Numbered from the stretch's first letter, positions 5,258 to 29,992 are shown. The stretch: 64,000 bases of DNA from Dimorphilus gyrociliatus (GCA_904063045.1 CAJFCJ010000005.1:2061988-2125987); one strand, 5' to 3'. Notes: generated by a model from the letters alone, not told the origin. Program-made: numbers and translations.

Positions 5258-5474
5258 CATTTTTCAAAAAAAATGATATTTAGTTTCGTTACTTTATTTG
5301 ATATGTTAAACGTATATTTGTATATATGTATGTATGTATGTTTGTTTGTTTGTTTGCTTGTAGTTTCTTACAACTATCTCCTGTATACAGTAATTCATAA
5401 AAAAAATAGGGAAAAATAATAAATTTCTCAATCAAATAGTAAAAAAATATAAGCTGTACAGAGGAGAGAAAAAA

Positions 5475-12190: not shown

Positions 12191-14048
12191 ATGGCGAATG
12201 GTCAAGAGAGTACTACACGTTGGTTGCCGCTTGAAAGCAACCCAGATGTAAGATGAATAAATTTTTTATGTAATTCTTTAATAAAATAAATTTTCTTTCG
12301 TTTCAGCTTATGAACAAAGTAAGTTTTATCAAACTTTAACTAATAAAGCATGTTAATGACATAACCATCAGCAACTGGTTGCCAGAAGCGCTTTTTTTTT
12401 TTTTGTCATTTGAACAATCTACGATTAGTACTAATTTAATTTTTTAACAATTCACTAAATCTATATTTTATCAAGTTAATTCTTGCTTTTTCATGAAATT
12501 TGTTCATAGTAATATAATATTACTATCTAAAACTTCCGATTTTGCAATAGTTCATCCGATTATTGCCCAATACCTTATATTGTGCAATACAAAGACAATA
12601 TCTACGAAAAACATTGAAATTATGATTATCTGAGAATTCGAGCAATATTTCACATTGTAATGCAATAATTATTCTGATCGAGATTTGATATTAACTAGTT
12701 ATTTGATATAGTATAGTAATACTTGTTTTCAAATTGTATTACCCTTATACAGTATGTTGAAGAGCTGGGAGCGGATATGGGCGAGTATCGTTTCACAGAT
12801 ATTTTTGGATTCGACGCAGACCTATTATGCATGGTTCCAAGACCTGTTCTAGGTCTGGTTCTACTCTATCCTCTCACGGAGAAGGTAATTTGTTATTATA
12901 ATTTGGCAACAAAATTTTAATAAGTTAATTTATACCACAAAAAATTCTTTTAGTCGGAGTCTGGCGAAATTGGTAAAGAAGATCAAAAATCGGATTTATA
13001 TTACACAAAACAAACAATTGGTAATGCTTGTGGAACTGTTGGTTTGATTCATATTTTAGCCAATACAAAAGAAACCCTAAACATTAAAGGTAAAACTATG
13101 GCAATATTTTTAAATTTAAATAATTGTTTAATTTTAAAATAAAAGCTGACTCGATAATTGGGAAATTCTTGGAAGCTACAAAGTCAATGTCTCCTCAAGA
13201 AAAAGCCGTTTATCTTGAAAAGGATGAAAGCTTTGGTGCAACTCATGAGGTTATAGCTCAACAAGGTCAAACACAGGTTAGTTCGGATGTATATGATCGG
13301 ACTATGTATACTATAACCATTATAATTAAACATTAAATGAAACAGTAGGCAAGTTTAGACAGTGCTATTTTGTACATGAAAAGAGCATCTCCGCAGAAAT
13401 CACTTGAAAGTGAACTAGACAACTTGAAAATAGTAGACAAAAGTAGTAAAACTAGTGGAAATTGTATAACGCGTAAACTTAAACCTATATTTGAAAGCAA
13501 AAATAAGAGCGGTTCAATGAGAAGCAATCGTTCACCAAATCCACAACAAGACCTAAAAGTGACTTCATCCGAAAGTAGTATTGATGATGTCAGTTAACGT
13601 CTAAATCTAGTTATAAGAATATTTGATATAAAAAACTTTGGAAAATAATTTATTTATTGTAGTTTTCCACTTGAGAAATGTCTTAAACGATAACCTTAAT
13701 TCATTTTGTTTATAGTGTCCCGGTAGAGAAGATAAGGTCGATTTGCATTTCATAGCTTTTGTTCACTCCAACGGAACTCTATATGAATTAGGTATGTGCT
13801 TATTACTTTTTTAATAAAAACTCAAGTTTCTTTGTCAATACAAAAGATGGAAGAAAGAATGGCCCAACTGCCCATGGTCCAACCACTCCTGACAATTTGC
13901 TTGAGGTAATGTCAAAAGATTAATTAAATATAAGGTCATAGTTTATTTGTAATTTTAACAGGATACTGTGGCAGTTGTAAAGAAGTTCATGGCCCGTGAT
14001 CCAGATCAAATGCACTTTAATCTGGTGGCTCTAGCCAAGAATATGTAA
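12191..14048 (+). CDS. UCHL3: Ubiquitin C-terminal hydrolase, UCH-L1/L3 family
   Basis: RWLPLESNPD start; 12-nt microexon 12307-12318 (LMNK); catalytic KQTIGNACGTVGLIH; KVDLHFIAFV; YELDGRK; C-terminal FNLVALAKNM*. Confidence 0.95.
13349..13588 (+). CDS. Candidate 240-nt cassette exon of the UCH gene
   Basis: CAGTAG acceptor ends at 13348, followed by 80 open codons and a GAT|GTCAGT donor at 13589. Phase 0/0, as required by the flanking exons (end 13276, start 13716). Confidence 0.55.
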
Positions 14049-24452: not shown

Positions 24453-25591
24453 TTACATTATATCGTCCTGTGGAATTGCTACAAAAGTCCTTGTATCATC
24501 GTTTTCATCTATTTTAGTTGGTCGTAATCGAACAGAACTAGCATCTTTAGATTGGCAACCAACATTTTTAAACTCTTCAAAGTAACCGTCATTTGACCAC
24601 ATAGCGTCAATCACAACTTGAAATTTCGCCATTTTATAACAAAAATGTTTCTATTGGGAATGCAAAGTTAAGTAAAATCCAAATAAAAGGCCTTTTTATT
24701 ACTTACCAAAAGTCTCGACTGTTGCGATGTTAGTACTTCACCTTTCTTACAGATCACGTAGTCTTCTCGCAAATTAATGATGCCTAAAAAGAAACGCATT
24801 AAGAATTTTGGCTTATGACATTGTTGCAGCAAATAGTAAAATTTAGGAAGTATCAGACCTATCATTTACACCCTCATAGATTTCAGGGTTAGGCTCAAGT
24901 TTTCGTCATATTTAGTATAGACTATTGAAAATGCAATGCATAGAAAAAGCATGCTTACCTCTTACAAGTTTCGTTGGAAGACCTAATTGACGCAGTTCAG
25001 GTTCCATATTGAAAGGGAACATTTCTAATGGACCTTCTTCAAGTGAAACGGTTTGTTCGGCTAAATTTCCCGCTCTAGCATAGTCAGCTTCAGAATAATT
25101 GGTAAACCATTTAAGAACATCCTCCTTAGTTTTATTAGTAAATAGTAAACCCGTTTGCCCTTTCAGACGTTTGGATATAAGATGTACATTTGGTTTATAA
25201 GCCTCTTCTTGAACACGTCCCAAAGCAATACTCATAACCTTATTCTTTCCGAAGCAAAATTTACTACCTTTCCATTCTAAACGAACGTCTTTTAAAAGAC
25301 CATTTCGCATATTGGCAACGGAAAATGTAAATACTCTTTCATACTTGTCAAGAGCTTCACGGATCTGAGTCAGAAAAGAAGATTTTTATAGATATGAAAA
25401 TCATGCTGCTTTTCACGAAAATAAAAATGCTTACATTCTCTATTAATTTTCCTTTTATATCTGTTCCTTTCTTGGCCGTCTGCGTAAGAGACACTGTAGA
25501 ATTAGAAGAATTATTATTTAAAGATATTTTTGAAATATTAATATAATAAATTTCAAAAATTACCTTTACGATCTCTCTTCGACCTCGGCAT
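24453..25591 (-). CDS. MRTO4: mRNA turnover 4 / ribosome assembly factor Mrt4
   Basis: MPRSKRDRK start, [51 protein letters not shown]. Confidence 0.95.
24850..24912 (-). ncRNA. Candidate intronic box C/D snoRNA in MRTO4
   Basis: C-like ATGACGA (24909-24903), D' CTGA, C'-like ATGAG, D CTGA (24856-24853). About 66 nt upstream of the 3' splice site in an unusually long (~170 nt) intron. The terminal stem is weak. Confidence 0.5.
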
Positions 25592-25874
25592 TTTTCTAAT
25601 TCCGACCACGTGAATTACACCGGAACCGGATATACAGAAAATGCAAGTGAGGCACTGTGGGAAAGGTTATTCTAATTGATTCTCGTCTCAAACTGTCTGA
25701 CGGCTTTTTGCACTTATTCAGTGCTTATTTCTCACCTACGTTATTCAGCGGCTCTTCTTGTTAAATCCAAATTCCTAGTAAGTATATCTTTACTTTACCT
25801 ACATATTCTTGGTGCTTAATAGCAAAAGCCGGTGCTTGTCGAGCCGTTTTGCGGCTTTTTCCCTGGTAACCGTG

Positions 25875-25882: not shown

Positions 25883-26338
25883 CAGTCCCGAGTTAAAATG
25901 AGTCATTGTCTAGATGTCATGATGCTAATAAAAGCAGAGGTATTCTAAAATGGCCTGTATAAGTTGATTTTACGCCGCCATTTTGAATAATTGTGAAGTT
26001 GATAGTCTAATCTCATTGGTTCTATCGTTGCTGCACTGCGCCTATTTATAGACGAACTATTTACTTATCGACGGTAGGAACTGCTGAATTCCTCAGGTTT
26101 TTACTGATTATTTTAATAACTCACACTGTATTTTATATCTTTTGTTTCCGTTGCTCCATGTAAGCTTGTTGTTGAAAGTCAATTTTGTTTATGGCGCGAA
26201 ACCATACTTAAACGCGCAATAATACATGCTATAATTGTAGTTCTACAGTGTCCGCCATATTGAATTCAACCGATTTCGCCAAAAAAATTTCATAACTGAT
26301 CTCTTCTCTTTTACCATTTCCCTCACGCAGAATCGAGA

Positions 26339-28020
26339 ATGAGTACCGAAAAGGATGATCTGGTCCAAAGGGCCAAACTCGCTGAACAAGCAGAAAGATA
26401 CGACGATATGGCTGCAGCCATGAAAAAGGTAACGGAACTCGGAATGGACCTGACTAATGAGGAAAGAAATCTCCTCTCGGTTGCCTACAAGAATGTCGTT
26501 GGTGCGCGTCGCTCATCGTGGAGAGTGATTTCGAGCATTGAAGCTAAAACTGAAGGCAGCAAGGCCAAGCAGGAAATGGCGAAGCAATACCGCGAAAAAG
26601 TCGAAGAAGAGCTTCGCGACATCTGCAACGACGTCTTGGTGAGTAATCCATACCTGCTTTTTGTTCCTGTTGTGTGAATTCAATCAAACCAAAAAATATG
26701 GAAGTTAATTGTCTTTACTAATTGTCTGCCCTATCTCGCTTTCTATTCCGCCTTGTTATAAGTGCATGCGTATTGACCGTTTTTTCGAACAGGCCTTGTT
26801 GGATAAGCACCTGATAAGAAAAACCAAACCCGCAGAAAGTCAAGTGTTCTACTTGAAAATGAAGGGAGATTATTACAGGTACCTAGCTGAAGTGAATAAT
26901 CAGGGAAACAAGGATGAAAAATCGGATAAGCAAGGTTAAACACGTTTTTAGAAACGATGCTTGGGGACTGCACATACCCGCGTGTTGCCAGTTGACATGG
27001 ATTGTAGTAGATCATTGTATATATCTCTTTAAAACAGGGTCTGCTTGAAAAATTTCTCGTTCCAAAGTCGAGCAGCGCCGAGAGTAAGGTCTTTTATCTT
27101 AAAATGCAAGGAGACTATTATCGGTATTTGTCCGAATTTGCTGAATGGGATAAAAGTACCACGCCTAAAGATGATTTATCTAAACGTTTATGTAAGTGTC
27201 AGATGATGTGTGCTTACTCCCAAAAAAAAAATCCTGACCAATTAATATCTAGCAACTGGCAACAACACTATAAAACTCTTTAAGAATTTTAAGTATTTTA
27301 TAAAGTAAATAATGTTATCACAGACGTGATAGACGCTTCAAAGAAATCATACGAAGAAGCTTTCGATATAGCTAGAAGCAACATGCAACCGACTCATCCG
27401 ATTCGGTTGGGTTTAGCGTTAAATTTTTCTGTGTTCTATTACGAAATTCTTAACGCACCTGATATGGCCTGCCATTTGGCAAAGCAGGTAATCGCGAGTT
27501 TTGGGCGTCTAATACGGAATGTGCATGTCTCCAAACCTAGATATACGAGATTAATAATATAGGTGATTGATAACGCTTTTTTGAATTAATTTCAACAGTG
27601 ATGAATGAAGTGATTGACAATTCTCGTAGTGCTTACCAAGATGCTTTTGACGTAGCTAGGAAGGAAATGCAGCCTACTCACCCCATCCGACTCGGCCTTG
27701 CATTGAATTTCTCAGTATTCTATTACGAGATATTGAACAGCCCAGATAAAGCATGTGAACTAGCGAAAAAGGTGTGTTTTCAATTTACTAACTTGTTTTA
27801 TTTGAGTTTGAAATCAAAATTTACCCAAAAATGCTTTGTCTACCTATTCTAACATCTTTTTCAGGCTTTTGATGACGCTATTGCCGAGTTGGATACATTG
27901 AACGAGGATTCGTACAAGGATAGTACATTGATCATGCAATTGTTGCGTGATAACTTGACCCTGTGGACTTCTGATACGAATCAGGAGGACGGAGATCAAG
28001 GAGATGGTGGTGACAATTAG
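26339..28020 (+). CDS. YWHAZ: 14-3-3 protein (zeta-like). Exons 26339-26638, [26793-26934 | 27038-27191], [27324-27487 | 27599-27771], 27865-28020
   Basis: [66 protein letters not shown] and [22 protein letters not shown]. Two duplicated exon pairs have matching phases. Confidence 0.97.
26983..27264 (+). promoter_or_regulatory. Putative selector/docking RNA duplex: 26983-26994 TGTTGCCAGTTG with 27253-27264 CAACTGGCAACA, flanking 14-3-3 exon 2B
   Basis: Perfect 12-nt reverse complement in the two introns flanking exon 2B. Confidence 0.7.
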
Positions 28021-29794
28021 AGCCTTCCATCCATTCAGTTTAGGAACTGAGTCTGTGTGAATGTATGAGCGTACGTTTTTTTCATCCGCATCTACCGAAA
28101 AAGTTTATCTTCATCTATTTGTCTGCTTGTTGTAATAATATATGAAAAAAAGGTGTTGTATTGGCATTCTCTATTGCCGGTGTGCGTACAATACATTAAA
28201 TGCTATGATGAAAAAAAAAACACATCATTTCGTTTTACAGCCCGTAAGAATTTTTGTCATGATTTAAAATTGTACGTTACTTCGTTTTTTGTAATGACGA
28301 TGAACGTAGATACATATATATCTTATATATATGGTTCATTTCGATTAAACGCAACCAGTGTTTTGTTATTTAATTGGTTTTTACTAGTAACTACTCGATG
28401 CTATAAATCTTAGCTGTTCATTGAGGCTGTTTTGGGGGTAATTTCAAATACATGTAACACAGACAAGTACTTCTTCCTTCAAAAATAAAGCTTAGTGTTT
28501 TCATTTAGCATTTAATTATCGCATATTTTTTTTGTTTCATCCTCAATATTTTATTACGGTTTTCTTAAGTAAAAGAATAAACATCTGGATCTGATAAAAA
28601 AAGAGTAGAGAAAAATTGACCGAAAACATAGTTTGTCTTGCCATTCGGCTTATATCATGTGATGGAAATTAAATAACAATCAAGCTTCTGTATAATTAAG
28701 CAATATTAATTCTCTATCTCAGTATTAGTTGGCGGTCTATATCACCTCTCGTATTCTTTGGTTGTAATTAATTTTTAGCAGTTAAAATAAACATTGTATA
28801 TCGACTTAATCGCTCTACTGTTCTCTCCCTCCATTTGTCCGTGTGTGTAATTATTAACAATCTAGAAAAAACCAGAGAAAAAAAGCCTTTTTGTTCGCTT
28901 TTTTTCTCCATCGTATTAGAATATTCATTATTTGCATATTTTACGTATATTATATCAATATTTATTTATATTTTGTCTAAGCTTTCTCCCGCTATTCCTT
29001 CTCTTACCTTCTAGACCGGTTTTTTAATACTAATGAATGTCTAATGATGCGTAACGCTTGTCTATGGCCCTTGTCCTAAAGTCAAGAGTTTGAAATAACC
29101 TTGAGATGACTGGCTGTCCTTTACGAAATTTAACCTCAGATAAACTGTACGTTCATGAATAGTATATGTACTTCTAATCAACTCCTTGTTACTTTCAACC
29201 TCAGCAGGAATTGACTAATGTAGTCTTTTACGTGCGGGTTTAGACCTTGGCAATGTACCGAAATGTATTCTTCCTATTAGACATCAATATATTATACCAA
29301 TTATAGCATTTACTAATGTACTGTTATATATATTTAGTATAACGTTTCTTATAACAACGCCAGCGCGTTAACCTAATATTTTAAGTTTGTCACCATATTA
29401 CAGACGGAATATCGTGATTGGAATTCGATTTTATCTCATTCTTTGCTGCTTAAAATATTACTAGTAATATACATAACATTGATATATAGGCCGTTTACCT
29501 GATAATATAATATGAAAAGAATGTATGAACATCATAAAACGATATCAGCTTGTTTTATCTATGAATTTGTAAATGAATTTTTTAAATTATTTATACAAGT
29601 CGTGACGTCTGGAATAGCTCTCTTTTTTTTTGCAATCGGACAAATTATTGTAAAAAAAAAAGCCTTGATATATCGATATGGCCGTTTAAAAAATCGGTCG
29701 AAATCGATATGGGACGATCCGATATTCAAGATATAGGATAGAATCTCCACTTTCATTTGAATCTTTTTTTTCGTTTGCCGTAAGATACAAAATC

Positions 29795-29992
29795 ATGTCA
29801 ACCTCCTCGCGAGAAGCCTTGGAGGCTATAAAGAACGTATCTGAATTACTAAATACGGGTTTGACGTCTGAACAACTGGTCACTTGTGTGAAGTTAATAG
29901 AAGAAGGGATTAATCCGGAAGTGCTTGCTAATATTGTTATTCAATTGAGAACGGCTACTGAAGAAAGCGGTGTCGACAGTGTATCTCAGTAA
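29795..29992 (+). CDS. MZT1: Mitotic-spindle organizing protein 1 (MOZART1), single exon
   Basis: SELLNTGLTSEQLVTCVKLIEEGINPEVLANIVIQLR matches the family pattern; 65 aa. Confidence 0.93.
   Translation: MSTSSREALEAIKNVSELLNTGLTSEQLVTCVKLIEEGINPEVLANIVIQLRTATEESGVDSVSQ

Follow-up and report, generated by a model that had tools for sequence, protein, structure and literature searches.

Two adjacent pairs of tandemly duplicated exons in a zeta-type 14-3-3 gene of Dimorphilus gyrociliatus

Proteins of the 14-3-3 family recognize phosphorylation marks on hundreds of clients, and in vertebrates seven genes supply their diversity. In a 64,000-nucleotide stretch of Dimorphilus gyrociliatus DNA (the window), we identified a 14-3-3 gene in which two neighboring internal exons are each present in two homologous copies, 2A and 2B followed by 3A and 3B. 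How are these four exons used, and why are the rarely used ones more conserved than the dominant ones? A sequence-only reading of the window had proposed two consecutive pairs of mutually exclusive exons and hence four isoforms. Mutually exclusive 14-3-3 splicing has been described for Drosophila and other insects (PMC6071210, PMC3795638, PMC8373072). In the literature searched, we found no description of mutually exclusive 14-3-3 exons outside insects, in annelids, or of a cluster at exon 2.

The 14-3-3 gene is a single gene on the plus strand, at ~25.7–28.6 kb of the window, with borders taken from the sequence and checked by script. It has two alternative 5' leaders. The first includes an upstream non-coding exon (25660–25777), whose start is approximate and whose 3' end is fixed at 25777 by a GT at 25778 and an AG at 26329–26330; contigs from runs X3 and X5 contain ~30–118 nt matching 25750–25777 joined to 26331. 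The second is contiguous with the coding sequence (26254–26338) and is represented by an X1 contig unbroken from 26254 to 26637. Coding exon 1 (e1, 26339–26638, 300 nt, 100 codons) encodes helices A–D, ends in phase 0 and matches positions 2–92 of the Pfam 14-3-3 profile (E 2.5e-35). Exon 4 (e4, 27865–28554) encodes helices H–I and the acidic tail. Its coding part spans 27865–28020 (stop codon 28018–28020, profile positions 189–223) and its 3' UTR extends to ~28554, with contigs from X1, X2 and X5 reaching ~28532–28559. The head-to-head upstream neighbor of the 14-3-3 gene in the window is MRTO4-like (Ribosomal_L10/RL10P_insert, 24912–25310, minus strand), and its downstream neighbor is MOZART1, a gene with one exon (29795–29992, plus strand). 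The introns of the 14-3-3 gene are 93–154 nt long, above the published median of 66 bp for the D. gyrociliatus genome (PMC7854359).

Between e1 and e4 lie the duplicated exons. Exon 2A (26793–26934, 142 nt) carries the motif LKMKGD and exon 2B (27038–27191, 154 nt) carries LKMQGD; the two are separated by intron 2 (26935–27037). Exons 3A (27324–27487, 164 nt) and 3B (27599–27771, 173 nt) are each typed by a 12-residue motif carried by this exon. The phases are those originally proposed, 0 to 1 for both exon-2 copies and 1 to 0 for both exon-3 copies, and every exon is bordered by AG and GT. Matches to Pfam PF00244 are colinear (2A, positions 94–136; 2B, 94–133; 3A, 136–188; 3B, 133–188), and each coding segment taken alone exceeds the Pfam 14-3-3 cut-off of 33.2 bits, with 2B at 50 bits and 3A at 80 bits. 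Sequence searches were performed exon by exon, and exons were concatenated only for frame arithmetic. Further 14-3-3-like pieces were not found elsewhere within the 64-kb window. Each pair therefore has the hallmarks of a mutually exclusive cluster: neighboring homologous exons that encode the same protein segment, share entry and exit phases and have canonical splice sites.

The frame arithmetic also agrees with the earlier proposal. All four combinations that take one exon from each pair give a single open frame of 253–260 amino acids, and inclusion of both or neither exon of a pair leads within a few codons to a stop, at amino acids 102–207. Because double inclusion and double skipping both give an early stop, the exclusivity of each pair is enforced at least by the reading frame.

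We take exon 2 to encode the end of helix D, helix E and the E–F loop, with helix E carrying the phosphate-binding Arg-Tyr and the groove lysines, and we take exon 3 to encode helices F and G and the start of helix H. Relative to 2A, exon 2B has LSEF in place of LAEV, a different and longer E–F loop, and the previously noted Lys-to-Gln change within LKMKGD. This change falls at the position of human zeta Lys122, a residue on the rim of the fusicoccin/stabilizer pocket. Exons 3A and 3B share an unchanged groove helix G, over a 24-residue stretch, and differ on helices F and H.

Exon 2A had been described as epsilon-type and 2B as zeta-type. Searches against PDB sequences point elsewhere: 2A is closest to sigma and then to zeta, and 2B, 3A and 3B are closest to zeta (insect 6nyb_C or human), with epsilon lower-ranked or absent among the top 60 matches for the four exons. 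The LDKHLI motif behind the epsilon assignment is also present in zeta-like mRNAs of other invertebrates. Judged by these matches, the four exons are all zeta-class, and we rejected the idea of an epsilon/zeta mosaic.

We asked which exons enter the RNA. Sequencing runs from 16 studies contain the gene stretch, coral and marine metatranscriptomes among them. The RNA evidence consists of contigs, not reads, from four runs (25 of 82 records listed), and rare forms are lost from contigs. In all four runs the long spliced form is one and the same, e1-2A-3B-e4 (junctions 26638>26793, 26934>27602 and 27771>27865). Exactly one exon per cluster, 2A and 3B, is thus found in the mature transcript assembled in the four runs. 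The two adjacent frame-compatible clusters stand, but the contigs do not demonstrate four isoforms: they provide one full form, which is certain.

Traces of the inner exons are sparse and partly unspliced. The only splicing seen for exon 2B is from its donor to 3B, next to a retained intron 2: contigs stop exactly at 27191, and an X5 contig comprises intron 2 and 2B followed by 13 nt of 3B, at ~19% of the main depth and with introns 1, 3 and 4 uncovered. Exon 3A was seen only as a donor joined to e4 with intron 3 retained, in an X3 contig that runs from intron 3 through 3A to 27487 and then into 24 nt of e4. This contig has two mismatches, one of which is a TTT>TTC variant also found in the related contig L005 (described below). 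Depths in X3, the deepest run, were 167 for 2B, 198 for 3A and 195 for retained intron 1, against 8,000–48,000 for the main exons. The 25 of 82 contig records listed contained no e1>2B junction, no 2B>3A junction and no other junction into the 3A acceptor. The donor sites of 2B and 3A are used, and this use is real but rare in whole-sample RNA.

These contigs bear on the main alternative, one that we consider unlikely, namely that the inner exons now act chiefly through regulated unproductive splicing, as poison exons. A message that includes 2B after 2A or retains intron 2 would then meet a stop in frame, and the amount of 14-3-3 would fall. The X5 contig (intron 2 retained, other introns uncovered) is consistent with this behavior, as is an X3 contig that starts at 27036 and fits 2A>2B double inclusion better than e1>2B; a TAA at 26937–26939 directly follows the 2A donor. 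The 3A>e4 junction argues in the other direction, since by skipping 3B it follows a productive pattern, and a poison exon needs neither a matching phase nor a matched homologous helix.

The dominant junction also exposed a peculiarity of the window. A TGA at 27599–27601, at the start of exon 3B, is present in the window only and is absent from the transcripts of all four runs and from two related contigs, L005 and L090. Because the transcripts do not contain this TGA, their exon 3B starts at 27602, as does the acceptor side of the 2A>3B junction. The same absence makes the Met in the window's V-M-N-E-V peculiar to its strain or assembly: the TGA is either a strain-specific in-frame duplication of 3 nt or an assembly slip. 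In a separate comparison, window positions 26819–26825 were set against runs X1–X5, L005 and L090, and at least four sequence lineages of the worm can be distinguished in public data (the window, a transcript type with only the 26823–26824 AC>GG difference, L005 and L090). This number suggests a species complex or deep strain structure.

The related contigs address whether the tandem layout is genuine. A search with exon 1 returned two near-identical ORFs and led to contigs L005–L008 and to L009 with L090, which are Logan assemblies of other sequencing runs and independent of the window assembly. Six further contigs from six Logan runs share the layout, four accessions being of the L005 type and two of the L009/L090 type. 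L005 is ~87% identical to the window at the nucleotide level over 4.4 kb, which marks it as a diverged sister lineage and not the same sample. It is also syntenic with the window, with an MRTO4-like gene upstream on the other strand and MOZART1 downstream. Both L005 and L090 have 2A, 2B, 3A and 3B in the window's order, share the six exon bodies and have intact splice sites. At 2682–2972 of L005, the recorded gene call reads through two stop codons, apparently under another genetic code, and the 2B-containing ORF of this contig is therefore stored as 96 amino acids.

The shared exon order in L005 and L090 removes the concern, raised with the original proposal, that the locus might be an assembly merge of two haplotypes or paralogs. 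A merge, or the related possibility that 2B and 3A are dead relics of duplication, is highly improbable. Coverage of 2B and 3A only at the level of introns in the deepest run is what a relic would give. Against both stand the recurrence of the layout in two diverged lineages (six further contigs, whose intron sequences are distinct), the intact splice sites and absence of amino acid changes in 2B and 3A in all lineages, and unspliced RNA contigs that run across the borders of 2B and 3A just as the window sequence does. We conclude that the two-cluster tandem-exon architecture of this zeta-type 14-3-3 gene is real and conserved.

Comparison of the window, L005 and L090 further shows how the exons have changed, and gives the strongest of our results. 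Exon 2B is identical to L005 at 154 of 154 nt and differs from L090 by one synonymous change; exon 3A has 100% amino acid identity in the three lineages and three synonymous changes. Together, 2B and 3A have four synonymous and no non-synonymous changes (binomial p 0.0017 under neutrality). Exons 2A and 3B together have five synonymous and nine non-synonymous changes (pN/pS ~0.4), with five amino acid changes in 2A; for constitutive sequence, namely e4 and a part of e1, the counts are 13 synonymous and four non-synonymous. On these counts, all four alternative exons are evidently under purifying selection and neither 2B nor 3A is decaying, contrary to another outcome that had been considered for the locus.

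Over longer times, the members of each pair have diverged considerably. Exons 2A and 2B are 53% identical in amino acids and 3A and 3B are 76% identical, and identity at third positions is 0.30–0.31, equal to random, which means that synonymous sites are saturated. By this measure, both pairs are old duplicates. Saturated synonymous sites combined with retained residues indicate that both copies of both pairs have long been kept as protein-coding sequence.

Conservation of the inner exons also extends beyond the protein. Synonymous rates per site are 0.03–0.09 in all four alternative exons versus 0.13–0.20 in e1 and e4. Intron 2 has 3–5 mismatches in ~102 nt across the three lineages (95–97% identical), in contrast to 14–38% divergence in introns 1, 3 and 5. 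The introns contain sharply bounded invariant islands, which flank 2B and 3A. The islands cover intron 2 in full, the final 90 nt of intron 1, 73 nt at the start of intron 3, and both ends of intron 4 (54 nt at its start, 27488–27541, and 36 nt at its end); the stretches adjoining them differ by 15–38%. Depressed synonymous rates and conserved intron flanks are general features of regulated alternative exons.

At the nucleotide level 2B and intron 2 are conserved almost completely. Coding for protein does not require this much, and a purely RNA-level role could be the reason. This is how the poison-exon explanation accounts for it: 0–1 changes in the 154 nt of 2B beside a 95–97% identical intron would be the mark of a regulatory RNA and not of alternative proteins. 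Yet 2B and 3A keep full 14-3-3 coding capacity despite saturation of synonymous sites relative to their partners, which argues for long-term protein-level selection on each copy, and all four recent changes in these exons are synonymous. We favor their maintenance as coding alternatives.

Folding predictions suggest what the invariant intron sequence may do. The segment 26935–27598, the 664 nt removed from the dominant mRNA, has a predicted energy of -172.6 kcal/mol, compared with -149.7 ± 6.3 for shuffled sequences (z -3.65). Two nested helices are common to the MFE and centroid folds. In the outer helix, 26961–26975 of intron 2 is paired with 27517–27532 of intron 4 (8 + 7 bp and a single bulge, -18.5 kcal/mol), with 2B, intron 3 and 3A all inside it. 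The inner helix joins 26983–26994, also in intron 2, to its complement at 27253–27264 (a perfect 12 bp, -18.8 kcal/mol) and encloses 2B alone. The island-to-island duplex energies exceed those of 99.0–99.4% of dinucleotide shuffles (fractions 0.006 and 0.010). All four arms lie within invariant islands, and conservation ends right after 27264; the arms are invariant in all three lineages, and hence there is no covariation in that set. The nested helices, as modeled, could loop out the inner exons 2B and 3A. Two other candidate pairings, 26651–26660 with 27481–27490 and 27307–27320 with 27568–27581, were rejected: in L005 their arms carry changes that are not compensated.

The position of both inner exons inside the outer predicted helix is also relevant to a different interpretation, according to which only two isoforms exist and a coupled 2B-3A module (e1-2B-3A-e4) alternates with 2A-3B. 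The two exons are adjacent, both rare and both extremely conserved. They are also closer to exons 2 and 3 of an L001-type gene (86% for 2B and 76% for 3A) than are 2A and 3B (67% each). What the RNA contigs contain makes such coupling quite improbable: the sole observed 2B junction leads to 3B and not to 3A, and the 3A contig has intron 3 unspliced upstream, with no 2B>3A junction among the 25 of 82 records listed.

The reading that we favor, with a probability of roughly 0.65, is that splicing of the two pairs is regulated and mutually exclusive: 2A-3B is the default, and 2B and 3A are coding alternatives that are rarely used but maintained by selection. In this reading, two adjacent ancestral exons of a zeta-class 14-3-3 gene have each been duplicated in tandem, one being the helix E exon with the phosphate-binding Arg-Tyr and groove lysines, the other the helix F-G-H exon. 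The default message joins the outer copies, 2A and 3B, with 2B, intron 3 and 3A removed as part of one 664-nt intron. The nested helices would probably bring the 2A donor to the 3B acceptor and hide the inner exons, an arrangement that fits the dominant isoform. We infer that a small fraction of transcripts, probably confined to certain cells or stages, are productive mRNAs that carry 2B or 3A as coding alternatives. The resulting proteins would differ at the end of helix D, at the Lys122-equivalent position (Gln in 2B), in a longer E–F loop and on the outer faces of helices F and H, and may differ in function accordingly.

The closest known parallel is Drosophila 14-3-3 zeta (leonardo), which is likewise zeta-type, has tandem homologous internal exons and is known to choose one at a time. 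The fly gene has one mutually exclusive cluster of three exons (PMC6071210), which gives three spatially restricted isoforms (PMC3795638). The worm gene instead has two clusters side by side, each of two exons, and the first of them covers the helix E exon. Looping out of exons by intron RNA pairing has been reported for the fly gene (PMC11802352, PMC6071210), whereas the worm helices are predicted. The two systems also differ in the expected geometry. In the fly model, the pairings of a downstream docking site with different selectors compete (PMC6071210), whereas in the worm each of the two strong helices has an intron-2 arm of its own and, in the MFE fold, one lies inside the other. A search for intron complementarity in the worm gene found no one element that could pair with sites next to both variants. 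We conclude that the worm locus is a two-cluster version of the exon switch already known from insect 14-3-3 zeta.

Several independent tandem-exon clusters in one gene, with combinations that multiply, are also a feature of Dscam1 and Mhc of arthropods (PMC8373072, PMC6071210). In those genes each cluster holds many variants and combinatorial use is documented; the worm gene offers two by two choices, with one combination dominant.

Genomic contigs of other animals place the exon-2 pair in a broader context. A search with 2B recovered a family of LKMQGD-type exons in such contigs, only distant ones. In contigs L004 and L094 an LKMQGD exon precedes one with LKMKGD; both exons run from phase 0 to 1 and have good splice sites, and the introns are of kilobase length. 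These contigs share with the worm the same Lys/Gln difference between members of the pair, and differ from it in order (Gln then Lys, as opposed to Lys then Gln in the worm). The exon-2 cluster, which the sequence-only reading knew from no other gene, is thus real in the worm and not unique to it. Kilobase introns in L004 and L094 likewise weaken the suggestion that a compact genome had regenerated 14-3-3 diversity by splicing. All 57 full-length 14-3-3 mRNAs from metatranscriptomes have LKMKGD, and among these 57 we found no pair identical outside exons 2 and 3, as isoforms would be. A third residue, Arg, occupies the Lys/Gln position in an exon-2 ORF of P0015 (LKMRGD, Logan assembly).

Tandem copies of exons 3 and 4 are common in other contigs. 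Frame-compatible exon-3 pairs were identified in L091, L093 and P0148–P0155, with each copy 164 nt where measured. In a tree of 54 exon-3 residues, worm 3A grouped with P0148b with support of only 87/66, a value that does not resolve the orthology of 3A and 3B to the other pairs. L091, in which exon 3 is duplicated, has the counterpart of Dimorphilus exon 1 in three pieces at 1031–2280 (two extra introns), and the protein of its first exon-3 copy is identical to that of metatranscriptome mRNAs L019 and L026. An RL10P_insert/MRTO4-like gene lies upstream of 14-3-3 in L093, as in the window.

Exon 4 is a third duplicated position in 14-3-3 genes. Tandem copies of the helix H–I exon (a 10-residue motif through LRDNLT, 99 nt, phase 0 to 0) occur three times at 5295–6425 of L004 and twice at 12537–13220 of L093; exclusivity at this position is not enforced by frame. 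These genes have their second cluster over exon 4, unlike the combination of exons 2 and 3 in the worm.

A broader and more tentative proposal, which we regard as doubtful, is that an old, shared exon-2 pair toggles the Lys122-equivalent residue between Lys and Gln and adjoins an equally old exon-3 pair, that nested helices couple the two choices, and that the products serve as client-specific adaptors in particular cells. If this is true, the same Lys/Gln switch in L004 and L094, from other phyla, would mark an ancestral and unnoticed feature of protostomes. If a single zeta gene is diversified by swapping its groove helix, it would offer a natural two-state Lys/Gln switch with which to study isoform specificity. 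At 1.2 kb, the locus is also compact enough to serve as a test bed for the choice between exons of two adjacent pairs, and its invariant intron elements can be mutated.
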